Assembly (NCBI GenBank): GCA_037447605.1
Contig: CM074809.1
Coordinates: 1,168,689 to 1,232,688 of the forward strand
Length of the DNA stretch: 64,000 nt
Source: Zygnema circumcarinatum SAG 698-1b
Lineage: Eukaryota > Plantae > Zygnematophyceae
Direction: 5' to 3'
Numbering within the stretch: the first letter of the stretch is position 1; each line of letters opens with the position of its first letter. Shown here in pieces: positions 23,403 through 39,168 of this stretch. The notes under the pieces are model-generated. The model was not told the origin of the DNA. It did not search any database and worked only from the letters and a program-made list of their open reading frames with translations. Position numbers and translations under genes: made by a program.

Positions 23403-24621
23403 ACATCGTGCGGCTGACAGTCTTGCCATCATCATGAGGTTATGATGGCATTGGTTGTATGTAAAGGGGGCTTTATTGATCACGGGCCGGCTATTCGTGA
23501 ATGGAAAGTTGAAGCTGTGTAGGAGCTGAGTTGTACCGAGAGGTTTGGTCGGACCGATTATTAAAGGATCTGCAAAGTTGAGGGTCTTTGTCCTCCAGAT
23601 GTGGAATAAGACGCAGCATTTGCGAAGGTCGGGAGTTTTTGGCTTTGTGAACACGCGCCTGCGTTCTGTACTTCCGTCGGTGCTCTGGATGGTAACGGAA
23701 TTAGAGAGTACCACTCGGTGTCTTCTCCGCAAATGTCGATTATTGTTGTCTAAAAGTGGATATCATTCATGCTTCAGTTACTGTACATGTGTCTAGAAAT
23801 GGTCATTTTCGCCTTTCTAAATCGTTCAATATTTTCCTTGTGAACTTTTGTCTTTGTGTGTGTCGTCTTTGACGCACCGTGGCCTTTCGCTTGCGCTGCC
23901 TCTCCATTTGCCCGTTATCAGTAGTGAGGCTTCCGAATGTAGAGCTCGGACTCACCAGCCTTACTTGAAGGGTGATAAGTTACTAAACAGAGGCGTATAC
24001 ATCGCTTTTGACTGACTGAAGCGTGGCACTAAAAAGTGGTTAGATTGTCATGGAGTATTGAATAAAAAATGCTCGTCACTCACGAAGACACATTTTTAGT
24101 CACAGTTATTTTCAGATTCGTTCTACTTTTGTTTTTAGTTAGTAATTACCTGTAATTGTAGTCATTTCATCTGTAACTACTGATTACGAATCAATAAGCT
24201 CGACATTATATCGGCGAGGAAACTCTTTATCTTGCATTGTAGTTCGGTTGAGAGTGATCCAGTTTAGCATTTTTTTTTTTTTTTTTTTGTTACTTCCGAG
24301 ATGATCTGCCATCCCTAGTCTCTGGTCCTTAGGGCTTTCAGGGTGAAAGAGTAAATCAAATAGGGAGAAAGGCAATCCATCCAAGCATATGGCCGATAAA
24401 AAAAGAGGGAAATAATCGCGTCTCTTAAAAAAAATATTTACAAAAACGTACAACATGGACCTTGAGGCAAGAACCTAAGGACCTTTACATTCCTAGTGAA
24501 GCAAGCTCAGCCTATAAATAAATTTTGCAATTGCGGTTGAAGTCAACCTAAAGACATCTCACAAAAACAGTGTATTGTATTGCGCCACTTCATCTCAGAT
24601 GTCCGGCAAGACTCCGACTCC

Positions 24622-27610
24622 CTATTTTGGCTTCTGCGCAGTTATGAGAGCAAACTTGATCAGCCCTCTTTGAAAGCCTTGCACCATGAGAAACATGGCT
24701 AATGCTCCCCGCATGGTTGTCCATCCTGCATGACAGAGCAGGTATGTGAGCGGGGGGGAACAGAGAGGGAACACTGATCCAAGACTCTTAGTTTAAGGTC
24801 TCCTAGTTTATTGGACTCTTAATCCAATAGACTTGCAGTGCACAGCAGGTCGTTTCAGCAGCAACGATGAAGAACCGTAAGGCCAGAAGAAGAACATTCT
24901 AGAATGGTGGAAGACCTTAAACTACGAGAGGAAATTATCGAAAGTGACTTCGAATGATGCAGCTGGCATCACTAACGTACCTGATCTCAGAAGCCCCACC
25001 AGGCCCTTTATGCTCATCGCAGAGGCAATAACTGCTGGCCAGAAGGGCGTTACGAACTCCGTCCAGTCAGTCGACTTTACCTCCTGCGAGTTCCTTCCCC
25101 CCCGTACGAAGTTACTAATGAAAATCTCCTATTACTTTCTCAAAACGAGCTCATTCACATCATAGAAAAAGTTGCATGCATGATAGAATGTCTTCGTCGG
25201 CCCATCGTCAAGAGGTTGGACGAGGAAAGGGGCATAGGCACACCTGTAAGCCAACTTCCTTGGCCAGCCTAACATAATCGTCCGCGGAGCACCAAGCTGG
25301 GAGATAGTAAGCGCTGCAGATTCTATCAAGAAGAGCCTGAAAACGAGCCATACAGAACCTCCCATCTGTTTGGCCTCAGAAACTTGTCATCCAAACAAAA
25401 TGAATGACAGCACCTGGCTTCATATTAAGAGCCAGAATCAAAATAACGACAATGCAAGAGATTACTATCAATTGGTCAAACGCGATGCAGTTTTAGTTTT
25501 TTTTTTTTTTTTTTTTTTTAGTTTTAGTTTTAGTTTTAGTTTTTTTTCAGTTCGCTCTGTAGTTTCGACATGAGATGTGAGAGAAACGGGAGATGGAATT
25601 GCAAGGAAGGCAAGGAAAGGAAAATGTCAGGGGAAAAGAAGAGTGGGGAAGAGGGCTTTGGAGGAGGACTTGTCCAACCCTCGGAATTCACCTCCTCGTC
25701 CCCTGTGAGCGAGGTCTCCCCCTCTTGCAGATTCCGGTGGCACCAAGTCACAATGATGATTCTTCCTCCCGGTGCCGTCACCCTCGCCAGTTCACCTACA
25801 AACTGACACCTCCGCCCCCCAGCTACGTCAGGCTACTTCAAAAAGTCACCCTCTGCAACAGTGAAAAGTCACCTGCACCATAGGAAACCAAAGAAAATGG
25901 TAACTTGAGAAAGGAATGGTGTAGCCCAAGAGAGTGGACAATAGAACCATTAATTCAAGTTCAAACTCGAGGTCGATCAAAAACATTGAAGCTACCTGGG
26001 GCTTGTTTGGCATGTGCTCTCCACTTTCCATAGACCAGACGAGATCAAACTCGCCATCAGGAAACGGCTGTTTAAGGGCATCCGCCACCTGTACGGTGAC
26101 CTGCAATCCAGATCCACGGAGCGAAATATTTTATCAAGGATGAACGAACATCACAGTGAGCAGTCGTGTTAACAGAATACTCAATGTTCCACAACCAATC
26201 ACCTCAGCTGAGGAACAAAACGTTCAGACAAAAAGCGTAATGTTCTTAAACATCAACCTTGCATTGCACCCCGGCCTGTTGAGTTCAACCCTTCGCAGCA
26301 TCAACCTTCGGCAATGCGCTAGTTACCTGATTGGCTAGTCCTTGGGCGGCACAAATGGCATTGGCCCTTTGAGCCTGCACAGGGCTCAAAGTGATCCCTG
26401 TCACCTTAGCTCCATATTTCCTTGCCAGGTGGCGAGCACTGCCCCCAATACCGCAGCCTACATCAACGACGGACCGAGGCCGTTCGTTCTCTCCAGCTGT
26501 TGTTCCAGCAACAGGAGAAATACAATGAAACAACACATCATCGTTAAATGTATAACTCTCAAAGAAAAAGGCCAGTCACGACAGTGGAGAGTCGAGCGAC
26601 GGATCAACAAAGCCTGCTCCATGGACATTTCAAAATTATCCAAATCCATTTTTGAACATTCCGCCGCATCAACACCAGAAGCAGCTAAACAAGTCATTTA
26701 GCAACTAAACTTGAGTGAGCAAGGACGCCACCAAACAAGTATCTAAGTGTACCAGGAATGCCGGCCCACGAAAGCGAGTTCTCGATCATATCGATCTGTG
26801 CTTGGCGGTGATCCACCGTTTGACCCAGAGGGTAATAGCCGTGGTGCATGTGCTCTCCCCACATATCTTCCCACAAGCTTGACGAAGCATCATAAAAGCT
26901 CGCAATGCCCTGCTTCAGCTCCACATTATCGTCCACTACCGCTTCCTGAAAGGGCAGAACAACAAGAATTTTGGCTTTAGTAGGTTTAAGAAATTGAAGC
27001 CAAACCTGAGCGTTTCGGCTATGCGTATTGCAGCTTGACGAGCCTCAGTGGCTGTTTGAGATCCACGGATGGTAAGTACAACCGAAGATGGGTAGACGGA
27101 TAAAGCCACTTTAGCAAGGATATAAACACCTAAACCTGTCTTCTGGCAATATCTCTACTCGCCAATTCCAGAATGCAATGCATGAAGTTTTTCCAAACGC
27201 CCTGGTGGAGAAACGGCCCATTTCAAAGACAAGAAACTTTCCACGATCGACTAGTTCACTATTGACTTGAGAGCGGCAGTTTAAAACGTTGAGTTGCTGT
27301 TCTATTTATGAGCAGTTCAAGACAGCGAGTGAAATCGTTCCGCAGCACATGAAAACAAGCACGATGGGAGCACCTGCACGACTGTAGCTTTCGCAGAAAC
27401 ATCGCACATTGTCCTTCTCTTATAAATTCTACAGGGCGCAGCTACAGCTGGCGACGATGAGATGCCTTGCGCAGTAATAGCTTGCAGACGGACGGACTTG
27501 CGTTGAGCGTGGGAAGAAAAACTTGAACAACCTGCAGAATAATTCCCTTTAAGAGGCGACAGCGGGCAGACAGAGGGCGCTGCAAAACGGGCGCTGTTGA
27601 CCAGAGCCAT
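24622..27610 (-). CDS. VTE4: Gamma-tocopherol methyltransferase, 8 exons, N-terminal transit peptide
   Basis: Exons read ELKQGIASFYDASSSLWEDMWGEHMHHGYY, VVDVGCGIGGSARHLARKYG (SAM motif I), ADALKQPFPDGEFDLVWSMESGEHMPNK, ELARVTAPGGRIIIVTWCHR, ICSAYYLPAWCS, DWTEFVTPFWPAVI, GWTTMRGALAMFLMVQGFQRGLIKFALITAQKPK*. Confidence 0.95.
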
Positions 27611-27850
27611 GGCTGCCACTGCCCTTTATACTCCCTTCCCTCCCTCTGCCTCTCGCCTATGTCTGACGGACGCTTCTCCATTCCAAGAGCTTCCTTAAAA
27701 AAGGGAAGGAATTCCTTCTCTATGTGCACAGTTATGTCACAAAATTCCAGTTCTCGCATGGAAACGAGGGGTCCAGATCCATATAAATTACGCCAACTGT
27801 TCGACATGGAACGTCTTCCGCGTTCAAAAAAGCACCGGAGGGCTGAGTGC

Positions 27851-28499
27851 CACGTGTCGCCTCCACAAGCAACCAAATTGCCAGCTGTGTCTGCCACGTG
27901 GACTAAACTGTGTTTCCGTGCTTCGAATTGAAAAATCCAGTTACCCGTTTGTTTGCGGAAACCAGCCCGACTCGAGTTTCCAACCCGCGGTTTGGAGCGG
28001 TGGGCAAATCTGCAAATCCGCAAATCCGCAAATTCGAATTTCTAACGAACTTGAACCGGAGGGCGGAAAAGTACGGACATGCTTGATTCCAGCCAATGTC
28101 AGCAAGCCACGTGTCATCCACGTGGCATTATAGTATTAACCATTTGAAATTCCAAAATCTGGTCGCCACGTGGCGACTCCCGCCACGCTTTCCGCGCTCA
28201 GTTCGGACAAAACTGCTCTTTGACCGAAACTGGCGGTCCGCTTCGGCCGTGCGGTTACCGGTCACCGCCAGAAGCTCTCATTGGCTGGGAGACACGTGGC
28301 ATACGCGGAGATTGGCCCCGAAGGCCCTACGAATGAGAGGCCGTGGAGGCCCCCCATTGGCTGAGAAAAATCGTGGTTCTCCTTTTGCGTGCGGTTACCG
28401 GTCAACCTCAGCGATCGTCCAGCACGGCGGACGTGGACAAAAAGTCAGATATTTTTTGTTTTTAATTTTCGACGTGGCGGAACCTAACGGCGTCACGTG
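27851..28499. promoter_or_regulatory. G-box/CCAAT-rich putative bidirectional promoter between VTE4 and VTE2
   Basis: CACGTG at 27851, 27895, 28108, 28119, 28167, 28293 and 28494. CCAAT at 28093; ATTGG at 28280, 28311 and 28356. CCAAT-N9-CCACG at 28093-28111. Perfect 16-bp palindrome GTCGCCACGTGGCGAC at 28162-28177. Confidence 0.65.
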
Positions 28500-29294
28500 G
28501 ACAAAAATGTCGGTTGCTTGTCTGCCGAGCATCTCGGAGCCCTCGAAGGCGGCCGCCGCTAGCGGACAAGCGCCGGCGACGGCGGTCCCTAGGAGTCACT
28601 CCCAGTGGTCCCCCGCGGTCCACCCACGGTCACTGACGTCCCTTTCGTCCCTCCACGCGTCCCGGCGGCCGCGCTTTTGTCCCCTCAGATCTTTTCTCGC
28701 GTCCTTGAGCTGACGGCTGTCCGGGTCCGACCTGGCATCGCCCACTTTCAGTTACAAAGCCGTACAACGCAACTTCTTGCATTTCTCTGCATAGAAACCA
28801 GTTTGCATTCTCGTCGGCTTCTGTGGTTAGAGCCACAGCCGAGGGAAAATGTTGCTGCCAACCGGCGGTTCACCGTAATCCGTCGGATTCCACCGCCGAA
28901 AGGACGCAATCAGTGACCGTGGTGCTGGACGCGAGCGTCCGTCTACCGTACAAATGAAGCTTGGAGGGCAGCTTAAAGGTGTTGCTCACTTTCAGCATTT
29001 TCCAGACGCCGCTCCTGCAAGCTCTTGCAGGCAGGTACTTGGAGAGGGGGTGCTTGCTTCCAACTGCAGCTTATTGATTCCTTGGAGCAGGATATTGAAA
29101 TTTGTGGCAGATGTTGCACCTCCAGCGTGTTATCTAGCGGGCTGCTTCTTGTCACTTGCAGGTGACGAGATTACATCAGTTAAGCGGCGCTGCTGGACAA
29201 CATAATTTTTTGAAGCTGAAACCTTTTTTACCTTTGAGCTGTACAAGAAACGCCTTCATTGAGAAAAGAAAGGTTCTTTAGTTGACGTTTCAAT

Positions 29295-32200
29295 ATGATT
29301 TCATACGGCGGCTCTCGAGTGGCTTCAAGCGCCACCTTAATGCCTCAATCTGCGCTTCCACGCCCTTCGGCTGCTCGAAAGCTTGAAGATGGCAGAGCTG
29401 TACCAGCTAATTTTAATCTACAAGCGCAGCTTTTAGGTGCGTTCCGTTCTTCTGGTCGTTCTCAAATTCAATTAAGGATGTCCCTTAAGATTCTTTTTGG
29501 TTCTTGGTCAGAATTTTCAATATGGGAAGTGACCAAATTTTCTATTGTTTGTCTAAGATATTATTCAAACCTTCAGCTTTGATCTACGGTTGGCAAGGGC
29601 ATTTTGTTGCACAGTTCGACGATTGTCTGTGCTCGTGCACCAGAAAGACTGTAGATCTCTGAACGAGTCAATTAACTCGCTCAGAAAACAAGCAGCTTTC
29701 AATTTATTTTTGCAAGTCAGGGAGCCTTTTTTGAAGTATGAGCATTTGCACCGAATAGCTACTGTTTTTTGTATACATAATTGTGGAGCAGGATCTGCAT
29801 TTGTTTCTTACAGTGTTTCTTGTTATTTAAAAAAGAAACTCAAAAACTTTCTTCAGCTTAGTTTATCATCTGGTTCATGTGACAGAGGGGCAATATTTTT
29901 TGCAAACGAATAAATTTTGCAAATATGACGTAGTGATTTTGTCTTGCCCTTTCTTTTTCTATTTTTTTAATCTCGTTATTTAAGGTTTAAAACTAAATTG
30001 GAAAGGTCTTCCTGAAACTTGGAAAGGTCGAATGCATCATGACACCTTTTGTGGTTCTTGCACTGCAGAATGTCATGCAACAAGTCATATTCCGCTGGGT
30101 CGTCAGGTTTCACAATGCAAGCTGGCAAGCCCAGTTAGATTGAGCCAGCTGGCGGGCGGTCGGCTAGTATCTCGAAAGCAGTTCTCAGATACAATTCGGC
30201 ACCGCAAGCCTAGCTGTAGAAACAGAGATGGAAATGGCGCAATAACTGCGACAGCCACTCCTCGAGATATAGAGAGTAGCTCCACTTTGCAAAGTAACTA
30301 TTACTCTTCTGAATTATTACTCTTTTGTTTTCTGCATTCTGTTGCAGGCGTCCGTTTTCTGAAAACTGGTTCATGTACATTGAGAAGTTTCCTTTCTTTA
30401 AAGATTATTTGGTTGCTGCAACTGCATCGAATGGCTCTCTCAAATTATTAAGTGCTCAAAACGCCAAGGTTCTTAGAATCGCTAGAGCATGCATGAGTAG
30501 TGTCGTCCTTTACTCTTTTTAAAGGTGGGATTGGAACTGATTATTGTAGAGCAACACGAATCGGACACAGATTTTTCTTCAGCTCTTCTATGGATCGATG
30601 CCTTCTGGCGATTTACGCGGCCACACACCATGATTGGCACCGTAAGTAGTTCTTCATTCTTCGCTCTATCAAGCCTAATCAGAGACTGTCCTTGCAGCAG
30701 GAAGCCACTCCTTCACTCCTGTGAAGCCCTCTGACTTAGAATTGTGATATGCGAACGGGACTGGGGGCAGACTTTAAGTGTTTTTTCCGTTTCGCTGCTG
30801 GCAATGGATGCTACGACAGGACTTAGTGTCCCCTTCATCGCAGGCCTCCTGAAGGTATGTACCTGCTGTCCTTTCTGACTAGAACCTGCTCTGCCTACCT
30901 CAATGGACGTTTTCAATCCTTTGCCATTTGTGAGTCAACAGTTCTGTACCGATCGCCGACGGAGGTCCGCTTCGCATTTGTTTAAGGGCTGACGTGGCCC
31001 TTGCAATCTATGTGCTTGAAACCGTACTACTTCTATGAAATGATGAGATGCTGACAATCGTTTCTGACTGTTTATACAGGCCGTGGTGCCAGCGTTGTTA
31101 ATGAACATCTACATCGTCGGCTTGAACCAACTCTCTGACATAGAAATTGACAAAGTATGTTGGACCCACTTCATTCCACGCTCGTAGGGTTCTTAGGGAA
31201 ATTCCTTTTTTAATCCTGGGGACGGCGGATGGTCAAAGGTTTTACAGTGAGAAATGGCCATTTTTTAAAGATTAGTCGAACCCGAATTAATGTGCCATGA
31301 TGTCTAGGATGATCTCTTTGTGACCAAGTTCCTTGCAGATTAGGTAGCACGGTATTTGAAATCATTACAGCTTCTCGGTCATTTAGCTTCCTGGTGTTTC
31401 TTTGCACCGAATTAATTTTCATTGGACTTAGGTGGTAGACATTGTCAAATGGGGAGTTTGGCTTGAGCGGTTCCTATGAAATGAACAGTTGAATATAGCA
31501 TTGCTATACGCCACCATTTCGGCATCATTTATATCGAATGTTTGGTATCAGATACAGCAGCAACTGGAGAGTGTGTGCTGAAACTTGACACAAAACTTAT
31601 GAAACTTATGAATTTTATCTGTACATTTTCTGGGAATTTTGGATTAAGTCTTTTTGTCTCGCTGTGTTTGGACAAGGCTTAGAGATTAGTAGAATGCTTT
31701 ACAACCAAGTTCGAGTGTGATGGGCTCAATTACCATGTCTCTTCCTTCTCTGTCCTGCTATTATTGAACTCATCATGACATGAACCTGGCTAGCATCAGC
31801 CAAGCAGTTGAATTACTCCTCGTTGATTTGCAGACATTGAACAACATTTGACATGACATGTCTCTGTCTCTGTCTAGTAAGTTGTCTTGGCATAGTAGCC
31901 TGAGGTCACATGTAAGTCAGCGTGAAGTTTACTTAAATTGTGGCTTTACTTCAAATGGACAGCTTCACCTTCCTTTTTCGGTTTTGCAATTATTATTTAC
32001 TGAGGATGAAGGACGTGGGTGCATAGTGCAGGTGAACAAGCCATATCTTCCTCTAGCCTCTGGAGAGTTTTCTGTTGGGATGGGTGTAAGCATCGTCAGC
32101 ATTGCCGCCATTATGGTACGATGCCACTTTTGTCTTTGCAAAGGAAAAATAAAAATAAATACCAACAGGGCGGAATACCACCTGCTTATGTCTCCTGTCA

Positions 32201-34606
32201 TTTCATGTTCATGTGCTGAGTGTAGTTATGGGTTGTGGGCGACTTGTAGAGCTTGGCAATGGGAGTGGCGTCGGGCTCCACGGCGTTGCTCCTAACACTC
32301 CTTGTCTCGATGATCCTTGGCACGGCATATTCAATTGATGTGAGGAAAGCCTTCAATACCTCTTTTATTTTGGTAGTTTATTTGAAAGTCCCAATGTTGA
32401 AGCTCTTTGTGAGAACTGATAATTTCAGTATGCCTAGTCACCATGTGGAAAACTAACGCCTTGAGATTATCTACACTTCATTCTTCATTATGCGATCCGA
32501 AGAAGTCTTCCCACTTCCTCCATACGTCCTCTCCCCTTGATTTTTCTCCTGGAGGAACTTTTTCTGTGGTTCCTGCAGGGTGTTACCGAATTCCGTTCTT
32601 CTGTCTGTCTTAGTGACAGCCATGATTTAGGCCCTAAGAGGCTGGCTGTTTTGTCCTTTCGTTATGGGCGCTCGCAGAGCTGAAGGGGGATGGGGGTTGA
32701 CGCCTGCAGCTGCCTGGGCTGCGGTGGAAACGATTTCCGCTTGTGGCGGCAGGGTGCATCCTCGCAGTTCGAGCAGTGGTCGTGCAGCTTGGCTTCTTTT
32801 TCCACATGAAGGTGACTTTTTTTTGTGCAGGACATTAGAGAAAGTTGAGCGGCTAAGGGAGTTTGCAAGAGCATGCAGTACCTGTCTCGGAAGCCATAGC
32901 ATCCAGTTGATATTGTTAACGTCATTCTTGGTTGGGTGAGGGATGGGGTTGTCTACTGCAGTTTGCCTTGAACCGAGCAGCCGTTTTGAGCCGCCAACTA
33001 CTTTTTGCAACTTCATTCATGTGCCTTTTCTCTGTTGTTATTGCGCTGTTCAAGGTGGGTTGATACTAGATACCTCTGCACGCGGAAAATAGTCCTCCTT
33101 TCTTTTCCTTCTGCAATATATTGGTGTTGTTGCTGGCCATTCGTTCATCAGAGTACGTTTCTTCCAATCGAATCTATCTCGTTCACCCTCTGGTCAATCT
33201 ACACGAGCTGTCATGGAAGGTGGTTGGAGTTTGACTCCTCTGGCACCTACGGATGTTACACGAGGCAAATCCCCTGAAAAGCCTGATCAGTAGAAAAATG
33301 TCATCTCTTTCATTCTGATCCATCATGCAAATACCCACATAATGTATCCACGCCTTACTTCTGACCTCACCCATTCTGGAGAGGACGGAGAGGAACTATT
33401 TACAGCTTATGCAACATTCTAATATGCAGTGCCGAATGTGCGCGGGTTGCAGGACATCCCTGATGCAGAAGGGGATCGCAGATTTGGTGTGTTTTCGTTT
33501 ACAGTGCAATTGGGACAACAGAAGGTTTGCTTTGTTATCCCTACATGCTTGAGAGCTGAGAAGTGGAAAAGGAAAGAGGAGAAAACCTACAAAATTGATT
33601 TCACATTATATTCAGCAAGAGGAGAAACTCGTTTTTGTCCAATTATCTTATTTGGAGTGGGATCAAAGCCGGAAAAGTTTACGAGAGCCTGTATCAGAAA
33701 GCTAGCAAGCCTCATTGTCGACCGGCTGCTCTGGCAGGTGTTTTGGTTCTGTATCACCACCCTCTTGGCTGCATATGGAGGAGCTCTACTCTTTGGGTTG
33801 ACATGTTCTACAATGTGGAGCAAAGTCATCACTGTGAGTAAACTGACAGTTAATGCGTTATTGTGATGTCTGCCTAGGCTGATGAAGGGATCAGCAACAC
33901 GGTTATTTTCTTTCTTCATTAGTTGGAGGGATATTGTAGCGGAATTAGCTTTTTTTACGGCCAGTACTGTTTAGCCTGTCCAACATGTCTTCTACAGTGC
34001 CAGTTTTGTTAAGAGAGATTTGTCAGCAGATTGTTGTGTTGTCAGGGACTTTTAGGGTGACGTAAGCAGAGAATGCCACGTGCGGGAGGGAGGGCAGACT
34101 TTGGCACACAGCACCATGGCACTGCTGCTGTGGCAGCGAGCACAGGCAGCGGACTTGACTGATAAAGATTCCATCTACGAGACATACATGTTCGTCTGGA
34201 AGGTAAGAAGGTTTGCCTTGGTTCTGTCACGTGTCAATAAGAGTATTGCTGTGTCAAGGAACGGGTAGCGAATGGCAGATCACGCTTGTTGTAAGGTGTT
34301 GTCAAATCAGCCGTTCACACTTTCAGCCCCCCTGGAAACTCTGTAAAATCTGAAACCTAAAACCCCTAAGTCATAGTGGATGGGAGTCATTAAACGTCTT
34401 GTAACCAAATTGGTTCGGAAGGCAAGCAGTTGTTGATAAAATTTTTATGCGATTGCGGAGATATCGAAAGGAATCTGGGCTTTAGGGATACTAACTCGTA
34501 TGTGGACTTCAAGAAATTCAAATGTGGACTATGTGCGCTCTAATCATGGTGGTGATGGTTGCAGCTGTTCTATGCGGAGTATCTGCTGCTGCCCTTCTTT
34601 CGGTGA
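29295..34606 (+). CDS. VTE2: Homogentisate phytyltransferase (UbiA family), multi-exon; start codon approximate
   Basis: Exons read [143 protein letters not shown]. These are diagnostic of the HPT1/VTE2 clade rather than HST. Confidence 0.93.
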
Positions 34607-35328
34607 AGAATGGTCAGAGGGCAGACGATTCTTTTTCATGGCGCATGCCTTCATTTGGTAAAGCAATTATAGCTGGCCGGATATTTTCTGCCTCGCCATA
34701 AAGCCACCTCTCCTTTTGTCTCCACCTAGTTTTGCCCTCGGTTTGGCGACAAGTGTATAGCATTGTTTAGGGCTATAAGTATATACCACAGGATAGACAC
34801 TCCTAGATAATCCTAGTGAGTTTTTGCTTTGAGTTGACGAGGCCATGCCGTGCTATGGCCCTGTTGTCTTATTTTCCAAGGAACAAAGATTTATTCTTGG
34901 TTCAATAGTCATTCTTCGGAGGACGACTCTCAATCTCTGTACTCAAGTGGCGGAAAAGCCCGAAAACCCTGAAAACCCGGAAGGGGAAAGGGTGACGTAC
35001 ATGAAAGTGAAGAGGACATTTCTTGAGTGCAGTATGTGTTGACCGTCATGCTGCAGCTCTTCACATGGACACTTCCTCCGCTTCATGGGCTGATGACAAA
35101 TCGTCATTACTTAGGTTACTTAGGTTGTGAGCAAGTGCAAGGTTTTTGTCAATGGGGGGGGTAAATTTAGGCCCTAGTTACGGTGAAACAAGGTGTTGCC
35201 GATGCTGCCACATTGGCTCGCATGCAATGTTTGCACCTTCAATCTTGTCCTTGCAAAAATAAACCTAAACCCTGCACCATAAAAACTAAAAGAAAAGAAA
35301 CCGGTAAACCAGAGATATGTATCCTTGC

Positions 35329-35375
35329 CCCTAAAAACCCTAAAAACCCTAAAACCCCTAAACCCTAAACCTTAA
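35329..35375 (+). repeat. Degenerate interstitial plant telomere-like repeats (CCCTAAA)n
   Basis: ccctaaaaaccctaaaaaccctaaaacccctaaaccctaaacc. Similar short runs lie at ~43945-43970 and ~52780-52815 (reverse orientation). Confidence 0.7.
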
Positions 35376-35932
35376 AAAAATCAGAGTTAACTCCCATGTT
35401 GTCATACGACACAAATTTCTGACCTTGCACGAGGCGGACGGCGACCTGCTCCCTTCTCCCTCGCCCTCACCTCCCTCCCTCCCTCCCTTCATACCGTACG
35501 GACGGCACATGCAAATGCAGGAGACATGTGGCACGTCCACGAGCAAAGTCCAGCAATCTCGCACGAGGCAATCCAACGGTCAAATCGCAGCGAGGGGACA
35601 CGTGGCACGTTCAGGCTTGCCCGGCAGGCAGCCCCCTTCGGACCGCGTCCCGAACCGCCGCCCGAAGCTGCCGCCCGCCCCGCGCCGCCGCCGTACCGTT
35701 CGTACGCCCCTGCGTATGCGGCCTCTCCCCGTGGTAACAGCACCTCGCATGCACCAACAACATGTTGAACACGCCCTGCACAACATGCTCCACTCCCCCC
35801 CACGCTCCCTCTCCAATACCAAAATGCTATAGATGTAGCAAGAGCCCCAAAAGCCCTGCCCTAAATCTCTCTCTCTCTTCAGTGCACGTTTCCAGCGAGC
35901 TCCAGGAGCTCGCCAATGCCCCAAACGCCTCG

Positions 35933-36021: not shown

Positions 36022-36697
36022 CCATGCCACTTCCTTCTCCTTGTATTGCTTTGAAACCGGAATTCCTAATCTTATTGCCCGCATGTGTTATTAGGGGCCT
36101 CAATTATTTTTAACCGATTCTGTGCAAATTTGATGGCGTTGCCACCGTGAGACCTATGCCCAATTCACGTCACGGTTTGCACACAAGTGTGCTATTTTGC
36201 AATTGCACTAACACACGAGTGTTGGTGTGCTTGTGTGCGCAATAATGTATTAATGTGCAGTGTGCTTGTGTGCATTGGTGTGCTAATGCTAGGAAGGAAG
36301 GGAGAGAGGAAACAGGGTCGGGATGGAAGAGAAGTGTATGGCACATCAGTCAGTAAAATTAATTTTGCTTCTTTTGCTTGAATGACTACATCATCACATG
36401 TAAGTGTCAAGAATGAGGGACTGAAGAAATATTTGTGGCAATTCAACATAGACATATCGACAGTCAACTGAATCCATGCATCACGCAATGGTTGACATGC
36501 AATTATTGATGTCCCACGACCTTTTCATCTCAGGCCCAAAAAAGAAATCCTTCTGACCGATGCGAAACCTGTCGCCTCCCACTCTCTCTCCTCCTAGGGC
36601 AGCCACCGCCCAAAGCGGCACCACGTGGACCGCCTGCCAAGCGGGAGGGGGGCCACTGCAAAGCATCGCCGGCAACTGTCATAGAGCCGCGTGCTGA

Positions 36698-36774
36698 CAC
36701 GTGGCTTATGACACATGGCCAGTGACACGTGGTTAGTGACACGTGGATGATGACACGTGGTTTGTCAACACGTG
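36698..36774. promoter_or_regulatory. Tandem array of (T)GACACGTGG G-box/ABRE-like units with 14-bp periodicity
   Basis: Cores start at 36698, 36712 (CACATG variant), 36726, 36740, 36754 and 36769. Confidence 0.7.
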
Positions 36775-39168
36775 GCGTGTCCTCGAGCAAAGTCCGCATA
36801 TCTCGCACGGCATCCAGCGGTCAAGGTGTACAGTAACATGAGGACACGTGGCGGCTTTATGTGGAAAACTAACCGTTGCACTTGCACGATCGTAGAGATG
36901 CGTGGCGGCATGATCACGTGACACGTGGCATATTCCGAGCAAGAACCAAAAATCTCGCAAGCGGAATTCAGACTTGACTGTCCGCACGTGCTCGCTTACG
37001 TCAGCAGAGTTGACCCACGCCAGCAAAAGTAGAATCAGGTCAAGCACGATGGATCCTGACAACGCCGCCTTCCAGTGCCACGTGGCCCTTTCCAAATTAG
37101 AATCCCCTTTTTTATTCGAACATTCGCAGTAAAAAAATAATAATAATCACAATAATAGCACTTTCCCTTTTATTTTTCTTCCAGCGGGGCAATCCGCGGC
37201 CTTCCTTCCCACCCAGTTCCACGCGCTACTGGCCGCATGGAACCGCCCTGCCCGTTCGCCGCACGCCTCTCCTCGCGCCATTATTGGCGCCATTATCGGG
37301 GAGGCCGTACGGCCACTTGGCCTCCCGCCACGCTGTCACATGGCTGACGTGGCGGACGGCGACACCCCCTGCCGCCCTCGCGACCTCCCCCACCGTACGG
37401 CCACCTCACCGATCCATGTCTCACCTGGTTCCCTCCCCCGTTGGACCGCATAGAACGCCGCCGCCCCGTGTCCCCCAAGCGCCGCGGTGCGCCTGGCGGT
37501 CGGGCCACGTGGCGCCCCTATCCGCCCGTCGCGGCGTGACTCCTCCCGCCCGGCCCGCCCGCCTCCATCCGCCGGCGCGCCTTCCTAACCGTCCGATCTT
37601 CCCGTCGCCCGCTCCCGGTCGTCCGATGATACCCCCGCCCCTCCGCCTTATCCAAGTATCTCCCACGTCTCCGGACGCCTTTCGACGAATCGCGACTATC
37701 CGTCACACGTGCAGCCTCAGATCGCTTTCCCCGCCCTTGGCCGCCCCACGCTCAAGCGAGCCGCCCGCCACGTGGCGTCACGCTGTCATCCTAGTCCGGC
37801 CATTTCGTACAATTTCGTACGCTCCGTACGACGTCGGCGACGCCGGCCGGCGACGTCGCCGTCAGCGGCCGGGCGGTTGCGCGCACCGCTGGCTTGACGA
37901 CACGTGGGCTTGTGACGTCACGCTGGCGGGCGCTCCTTCCTTCGGTGCAGGGCCTTGGAAGGAAGGGCCTTGCAAGGGCTGCAGGGAAGGAGGAGCCTTG
38001 CAGGGGTGGGCTTGCTGTTGCTGCTGCTGCTGCTGCCTCGGAGGCGGAGGTGTGTGCGACAGGGAGGGAGGGGAGAGGGTTGCGGAGGGTATTGGAGGGG
38101 TCAGTCGTGCGTTTGTGTTTGCAGGAGGAGGTTTGCGTGCGTGCTTGCTTATGATGCTCTATTTTGTTTTTTGGTGGTTTCGTTGATTGGAGTCTCATTG
38201 AAGGCGTTTTCCAGACATAATTGTGTCAGGCATGACGCGTATTTCTGGCTGGCTCTGCAGTGAAAGGGGAAGAAGAATAACTGTTTAGTTATGGTCTATG
38301 CTGGAATTGTGCTTTTGCTTGGAACTTGTAAAATTATTGCGCAGCTTTCTCTGCATGTATTAGCATCTATTATTATAGTCATGCTTCTGCTTTCGGCATG
38401 ACGCCCAATCTTTCTCAGTCTGCATTTTCCTTTTGCCTCCTTATATTGTTTCTAATGCGTATATTTTTGTTAACGCTGCAGTCATATTAACGCGTTGGAA
38501 TGTTAAGCAGTATGGGAGTGGCCGTGAATTATCTTAAGGAATACGAGGTTTATTGAATTTTTTAAATATAGAACTTCTGTTGAAGTGAGCCTCGTTGGAA
38601 TAACATTAACTGCCTTTTAGGCTCGTCTTAATCTCTGTTCTTTTCTGGTATTTTTTTTTCTTGGATGCTTCAACCGAAATTGGTAGACGCTGCGCACAGT
38701 CGCAGGGTCCGGGGTGTCTAGTTGTCTGTAAATTGTTTGGTCTTTCCAATTTTTCCTTTTGCACCAGCTTGTGAATGGCTGTGAGATTCAGGCATAGGGG
38801 CTTTCCTATCCTATTCGAAGGTATCTTTTAGTCTTTTTGTATGTCCACTGCTCGTTTCTCTGCTTCTGTTCATTATTTTTAGAGTATTTCAGGTTCATTT
38901 TAAATTGCACCATCCTTGGAACGTGTAATTTAGTTTAGTTTACTTTAGTTTTATTGTATCTCGACCATAAGCGTTCTGCTGCTCTGATATTGCCTTCAGA
39001 GTGAGGAACCAAGGTAAACGCTTAGTAAAGCGTCTGGGAGAGCAACGACAGAGGCTCTTTCTTGGACTACCTTATTTATGGAAGCAATTCGTGTGTTACC
39101 TGAAGACGTGGAGCCAAGACTCACTAGATAACTCGATGTCTCTTCGATGCAGCTGACGGGAGGCCAAC

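Follow-up and report, generated by a model that had tools for sequence, protein, structure and literature searches.

The stretch of Zygnema circumcarinatum SAG 698-1b DNA analysed here (64,000 nucleotides of contig CM074809.1, positions 1,168,689 to 1,232,688; hereafter the window, with positions counted from its first letter) carries two tocopherol genes that stand head to head. The gene for gamma-tocopherol methyltransferase (gamma-TMT, VTE4) lies on the minus strand, and a homogentisate phytyltransferase (HPT)-type gene (VTE2) lies on the plus strand directly beside it. Both genes are expressed, and the same divergent pair occurs in the distant relative Klebsormidium nitens. We favour, with modest confidence, the explanation that this pair has been retained by selection and that one compact control region co-regulates the steps by which tocopherol synthesis begins and ends. 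The window as a whole is intron-rich eukaryotic DNA with a G+C content of ~47%.

A tblastn search of the window with full-length gamma-TMTs gave seven colinear exon matches, and the exon encoding the N-terminal presequence was the eighth. Two of the VTE4 introns were backed by joints in RNA contigs (26496|26753 and 26945|27374). A placement of intron 1 by homology only, at 27432/26974, was overruled by these joints, which set its true borders at 27373/26945. Exons 3 and 4 matched Pfam Methyltransf_11/25, which identifies the domain as that of a class I S-adenosylmethionine-dependent methyltransferase, and the gene model contains the motifs VDVGCGIGGS and SMESGEHMP. The VTE4 protein showed 79% and 73–75% identity with proteins from transcriptomes, 70% with the gamma-TMTs of Coleochaete and Marchantia, 69.5% with that of Klebsormidium, and 60–65% with those of seed plants and chlorophytes. 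Identity of 60–70% with proteins that their sources name tocopherol O-methyltransferases indicates orthology with gamma-TMT. Additionally, the protein was ~50% identical to a cyanobacterial methyltransferase encoded beside HPPD, that is, placed like slr0089. On this sequence evidence, the predicted product is the methyltransferase that converts gamma- to alpha-tocopherol (EC 2.1.1.95), the exit step of the pathway.

In a maximum-likelihood tree, the window VTE4 was nested within the streptophyte gamma-TMT clade with moderate support (94/80). Its nearest neighbours were the transcriptome sequences mentioned above and one more, whose transcriptome carries the label Leptophrys vorax. Leptophrys, an amoeba, eats zygnematophyte algae, and the VTE4 sequence under its name may derive from prey. 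The window VTE4 groups with transcripts of streptophyte algae that are probably Zygnematophyceae, and its lineage is clearly distant from that of Klebsormidium. The closest relatives at the exon level were found only on metagenome contigs of 0.5–2 kb, which provided no gene context.

Introns 1–6 of VTE2 were set by RNA joints, all GT..AG, and the remaining junctions were set by homology to the Klebsormidium gene together with the GT-AG rule; those between exons 10 and 11 and between exons 11 and 12 are the least certain. Four exons matched the NCBIfam equivalog NF009525 (homogentisate phytyltransferase) colinearly at ~25 bits each, and one exon gave a weak match to Pfam UbiA. The model also carries two Asp-rich UbiA motifs, NQLSDIEID and KDIPDAEGD, which identify the product as a UbiA-type membrane prenyltransferase. 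A protein-atlas search with one exon of 34 aa returned matches labelled merely "UbiA". In the gene model, all exons from exon 3 on (30550–34606) start and finish in phase 0. The corresponding Klebsormidium gene has no intron between exons 11 and 12, which are both covered by a single high-scoring segment pair (L006:1972-1766).

If the UbiA gene encoded homogentisate solanesyltransferase (HST) of the plastoquinone-9 pathway, the pair would link tocopherol methylation to plastoquinone synthesis. The exon matches to NF009525 are compatible with this assignment, since HST would probably give them as well. Identity benchmarks speak against it. A verified cyanobacterial HPT was 39–40% identical to HPT1 of Arabidopsis and rice and 33–35% identical to HST of Arabidopsis and Chlamydomonas, and the window VTE2 protein was 42–47% identical to this same HPT (42% for the UbiA protein of the Klebsormidium pair). 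The motifs around PLASGEFS, after KDIPDxEGD, and YMFVWKLFYAEY fit the features of HPT1 and not those of HST, which serves as a hint rather than as a test; the literature consulted offered no motifs that tell the two enzymes apart. No structure of HPT or HST was found in the PDB. Judging from the benchmarks, the gene is very probably HPT, and HST is a very unlikely identity. The favoured product is accordingly a homogentisate phytyltransferase-type prenyltransferase (VTE2/HPT1, EC 2.5.1.115), which would catalyse the entry step.

The initial annotation had described a gamma-TMT gene (minus strand, ATG 27610) and an HPT-type gene (plus strand, ATG 29295) as adjacent, divergent, and ~1.7 kb apart. 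The gene models and RNA contigs confirmed this description, with 1,684 bp from ATG to ATG, and the methyltransferase and UbiA domains bore out that the two paired tocopherol enzymes are non-homologous. The VTE4 RNA contigs ended at ~27654 and those of VTE2 started at 29017–29077, leaving ~1.36 kb untranscribed between them. In each of the three RNA runs, depth was zero over 28100–28899, and it was negligible over 27700–28099; a search of 24000–35500 against Rfam and for tRNAs found no family and no tRNA. The absence of a gene between VTE4 and VTE2, also claimed at the outset, was thus upheld, as the spacer has no notable transcript. Both genes were transcribed and spliced in all three RNA data sets. 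In one run (X13), a contig with a depth of 2.1 was seen at 27719–27938, a short way upstream of where the VTE4 transcript ends; this contig may represent a rare upstream start or noise.

Seven CACGTG G-boxes lie in the spacer within 650 bp (27851–28499). The spacer also bears several extended G-boxes of the form GCCACGTG(G/T)C, CCAAT/ATTGG boxes, and a 45-nt imperfect direct repeat (28227–28271 and 28367–28411). In the whole window, CACGTG was observed 35 times, compared with 9.6 times expected by shuffling.

The adjacency would be meaningless if a mis-join in the assembly had brought the two genes together. One DNA contig of 9.9 kb (run X1, which may be the assembly's own source) covers 26300–32299 with zero differences. 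Six DNA runs, which come from four samples and three studies, contained every 31-mer sampled from 26000–31000. Because the same layout is found in Klebsormidium, the mis-join is excluded for practical purposes, and we regard such an artefact as extremely improbable; no sign of one was seen, although the initial annotation had named it as a way in which its proposal could fail.

In K. nitens (DF236952.1), a gene for a 465-aa UbiA protein and a gamma-TMT gene are arranged head to head, with 887 bp from ATG to ATG and the transcription start sites (TSSs) closer still. The window VTE2 exons matched this UbiA gene colinearly over at least 10 exons by tblastx, with 53.5% identity. When the 25.6-kb Klebsormidium locus was compared with the 64-kb window by tblastx, VTE4 and VTE2 were the only genes in common. 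The Klebsormidium flanks consist of a Methyltransf_21 gene and a DUF1295 gene, neither of which has a counterpart in the window. Conservation of the arrangement in evolution, a feature by which bidirectional pairs are recognised, is thus seen in K. nitens with flanks that are not shared. Since the pair is kept in both algae, it appears to predate the split between Klebsormidiophyceae and the window's lineage, and the flanks appear to have been reshuffled since.

Linkage of gamma-TMT and HPT is also seen in prokaryotes. When prokaryotic genomes were scanned for gamma-TMT, 80 cyanobacterial loci came up, and the 68 with at least 1.5 kb of downstream sequence were counted. HPPD was located directly 3' of gamma-TMT in 28 of these 68 loci. 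In nine, hpt occupied this position co-directionally at a distance of 34–442 bp, and in seven more it lay 0.7–8 kb from gamma-TMT. The gamma-TMT-hpt arrangement was found in Fischerella PCC 9431, Westiellopsis, Pelatocladus, a Chroococcidiopsidaceae metagenome-assembled genome (MAG), Halothece, Oscillatoria, and Nostoc. The hpt genes of the Chroococcidiopsidaceae MAG and Fischerella PCC 9431 scored 507 and 494 bits against NF009525, respectively (cut-off, 226), and the window VTE2 protein was 42% identical to these cyanobacterial HPTs. A Synechocystis MAG had HPPD (TIGR01263, 281 bits) directly 3' of gamma-TMT, reproducing slr0089-slr0090; for this reason, the scanned loci were considered to represent the true gamma-TMT paralogue. 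The tocopherol operons of Synechocystis are slr0089-slr0090 (gamma-TMT-HPPD) and slr1736-slr1737 (HPT-cyclase). The initial annotation had held that the pairing does not follow that operon layout. This is right for Synechocystis, in which HPPD follows gamma-TMT, whereas in other cyanobacteria it is hpt that comes next. As judged from gene order, the VTE4-VTE2 pairing is an operon-like layout in some cyanobacteria, other than that of Synechocystis. The accompanying idea that the module was assembled in eukaryotes is consequently not established, and a prokaryotic origin of the linkage is possible.

In dinoflagellates, gamma-TMT and UbiA domains are fused. At least 17 dinoflagellate protein clusters are such fusions, each in a single ORF, invariably with the methyltransferase followed by the prenyltransferase. 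They derive from Effrenium voratum, Symbiodinium pilosum (where the protein is named "VTE4"), Prorocentrum cordatum, and Alexandrium monilatum, and further members come from MMETSP, JGI, and Logan transcripts. The 818-aa protein P0029, which emerged from the exon search and served as the query that brought up these clusters, is encoded by a single uninterrupted open reading frame (ORF) on a 2.6-kb contig (L001:35-2491), with gamma-TMT at the N-terminus and UbiA at the C-terminus. A model of the fused UbiA domain matched HPT1/HGGT with 30–32% identity (E ~4e-17) and HST with 27–29% identity (E ~1e-12), so by sequence it resembles HPT1/HGGT more closely than HST. In the fusion P0300 (1034 aa), residues 97–249 form an extra N-terminal segment that resembles the C-terminal half of Pfam Tocopherol_cycl, with a score just below threshold (25.5 bits; cut-off, 26.6); this protein may be a three-enzyme VTE1-VTE4-VTE2 polyprotein or the product of a chimeric transcript. 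The gamma-TMT-hpt loci of cyanobacteria and the dinoflagellate fusions are independent signs of coupling of the two enzymes.

How selection could have kept the pair together can be outlined as follows. VTE4 and VTE2 would share one compact regulatory region of 0.9–1.4 kb, whose G-box and CCAAT elements would be read in both directions. The entry and exit enzymes would then be induced jointly, with light or stress acting via bZIP/bHLH factors as one possible trigger, and any break between VTE4 and VTE2 would harm the control of at least one gene. The shared promoter, the co-regulation, and the selection are what we infer from the arrangement. Several results weigh against them. The main weakness is that the adjacency comparison was limited to two streptophyte algae, the window's alga and K. 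nitens. No UbiA gene was found within 10 kb of VTE4, by annotation and tblastn, in Marchantia polymorpha or Physcomitrium patens, in Chlamydomonas schloesseri, Trebouxia sp., or Cymbomonas tetramitiformis, or on three further algal contigs. The pair is absent in these two bryophytes, three chlorophytes, and three other algae and is therefore dispensable. Synteny, which the initial annotation had proposed as a check, thus gave a divided answer: the adjacency is kept in K. nitens and is absent near VTE4 in Marchantia, Physcomitrium, and the chlorophytes examined. The pairing is thus no common property of plants, and the two genes came apart at a later time in those land plants that were compared. 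In Arabidopsis, VTE2 and VTE4 are located on different chromosomes. The ratio of VTE4 to VTE2 in assembler word depth was 7–9 in the three RNA runs, which shows only that the genes are unequally expressed. The TSS-to-TSS distance of ~1.36 kb in the window exceeds the 1 kb usually set for bidirectional promoters, and the window has G-box clusters at other places too (e.g., 36.6–37.9 kb), so they are not specific to the spacer. Finally, the putative orthology to HPT over HST leans on identity benchmarks and motifs.

The loss of the pair without obvious harm in Marchantia, Physcomitrium, and the chlorophytes, and in Arabidopsis according to established knowledge, would also be expected if the adjacency had simply been inherited without regulatory meaning, the short spacer being a small target for harmless breakpoints and its survival a matter of chance. 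The spacers agree with such neutral retention: that of Klebsormidium has one G-box and one ATTGG box, and it shares only generic elements with that of the window. On the other hand, nothing else around the pair is conserved between the two algae, and both genes belong to one short pathway, for which the chance adjacency of a given pair is ~2 divided by the gene number. Moreover, unrelated lineages link these enzymes as well, in one case as an operon and in the other as a fusion. We therefore consider neutral retention rather unlikely. Another possible history starts from the plastid ancestor, from which gamma-TMT and hpt would have been transferred together, one gene would have been inverted, and the linkage would have been left in some streptophyte algae. 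The tight co-directional order of gamma-TMT and hpt in diverse cyanobacteria is in line with this history, as is the same order, methyltransferase then prenyltransferase, in the dinoflagellate fusions. A direct relic would be co-directional, with gamma-TMT upstream of hpt, but the genes are divergent and not tandem in both the window and Klebsormidium. Many independent losses would also be needed, as the three named chlorophytes and the three other algae are unlinked, and among the cyanobacterial loci themselves the hpt layout is the minor one (9 of 68, against 28 with HPPD in that position). A relic of a cyanobacterial operon thus seems distinctly unlikely, and it is compatible with retention by selection and not exclusive of it. 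In a broader form, HPT and gamma-TMT, the first committed and the last enzyme of the pathway, would act as one unit, functional or physical, throughout the oxygenic phototrophs, appearing as an operon in cyanobacteria, as a single polypeptide in dinoflagellates, and as a divergent nuclear pair with a shared promoter in streptophyte algae. The algal pair would then perhaps be what is left of a jointly transferred cyanobacterial operon still present in the ancestors of land plants; we regard this generalisation as unlikely. The explanation that we favour is still a co-regulated divergent pair retained by selection, at the modest confidence given above.

Table 1 Coordinates of the VTE4-VTE2 pair in the window and of the linked or fused genes found elsewhere.
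Feature	Position or identifier	Strand or orientation	Details
VTE4 gene (gamma-tocopherol methyltransferase)	24622..27654	minus	8 GT-AG exons; ATG 27610; stop 24622; 371 aa
VTE4 exons 1-4	27654 (transcript end)/27610 (ATG)-27374, 26945-26753, 26496-26327, 26100-25996	minus	
VTE4 exons 5-8	25802-25692, 25336-25244, 25083-24981, 24725-24622 (stop)	minus	
Shared upstream region, untranscribed	27655..29016	no strand	~1.36 kb; from RNA word depth
Homogentisate phytyltransferase-type (VTE2) gene	29017..34606	plus	13 exons; ATG 29295; stop 34606; ~433 aa
VTE2 CDS exons 1-5	29295-29436, 30069-30293, 30550-30641, 30771-30854, 31080-31154	plus	
VTE2 CDS exons 6-9	32032-32115, 32250-32339, 32710-32811, 32962-33054	plus	
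VTE2 CDS exons 10-13	33453-33524, 33738-33833, 34098-34202, 34565-34606 (stop)	plus	
Cyanobacterial gamma-TMT-hpt loci	L075:8757-10617, L067:10007-11983; also L055, L060, L074, L084, L025, L065, L086	co-directional	
Dinoflagellate fusion proteins	P0029, P0296-P0311, P0314-P0317, P0321	gamma-TMT N-terminal, prenyltransferase C-terminal	

Neither a tocopherol cyclase nor any other recognisable gene of the pathway was found elsewhere in the 64-kb window, at an exon-level sensitivity that is limited and could let genes with short exons escape. The large ORFs neighbouring the pair have no pathway domains, and tblastn with the protein bearing the sub-threshold tocopherol cyclase segment detected nothing else in the window. 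Plant-type clusters are usually defined by at least three non-homologous genes of one pathway at one locus. Only two were found here, and the term "gene cluster" used in the initial annotation is therefore too strong.

Other features were noted around these loci. A telomere-like interstitial array (CCCTAAA[A]; ~4–6 copies) lies at 35329–35377, 0.7 kb 3' of the VTE2 stop codon. Farther on, a G-box-rich block with 57% G+C extends over 36600–37900. Eighteen of the 35 CACGTG sites in the window fall within 36622–37906, and a 14-bp tandem unit with a G-box (TGACACGTGGCTTA, 5.8 copies) is located at 36695–36776. On two high-GC algal metagenome contigs (L093 and L095), gamma-TMT is followed by genes for succinyl-CoA ligase (Ligase_CoA/ATP-grasp_2) and then VIPP1 (PspA_IM30). 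These contigs have no HPT gene downstream of gamma-TMT and represent a different conserved VTE4 neighbourhood.

The pair adds a new case to a known type of arrangement, and three lineages couple its two enzymes in three different ways. It resembles both a conserved bidirectional pair and a metabolic cluster in miniature. Like the window, cyanobacterial tocopherol operons keep tocopherol genes physically linked, and their gamma-TMT-hpt version pairs the same two enzymes. These operons are co-directional, intron-less, and polycistronic, whereas the window genes are divergent, intron-rich, and nuclear, are transcribed separately, and encode plastid presequences. Conserved bidirectional pairs of eukaryotes share with the window the divergent orientation, a short common upstream region, and long retention while the flanks change. 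In contrast to most of them, the window pair has a TSS distance of ~1.36 kb, beyond the 1-kb limit, and consists of two genes of one pathway, which is atypical. The plant clusters for avenacin, thalianol, and momilactone likewise link non-homologous enzymes of one pathway in a nuclear genome of the plant lineage. Unlike them, the window has two genes of a conserved, widespread pathway and not of lineage-specific specialised metabolism, and its linkage is ancient and lost in the land plants examined, not recently assembled. The dinoflagellate fusions couple the same two enzyme families but do so in one polypeptide from one ORF and in a different eukaryotic supergroup. In the literature covered, which mostly left out subscription journals, so that novelty is unproven, neither the algal pair nor the gamma-TMT-hpt unit of cyanobacteria nor the fusion of dinoflagellates was found to be described.

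Plant vitamin E synthesis is regarded as the work of dispersed, separately regulated genes. The VTE4-VTE2 pair seems to be a rare case of microsynteny that would have outlasted all flanking gene order in streptophyte algae and then been lost in the land plants examined. Taken together, the operon, the fusion, and the long-kept pair suggest that the amounts or positions of the two enzymes need to be matched. Such matching could guide vitamin E engineering, in which HPT and gamma-TMT are already the genes most often stacked.

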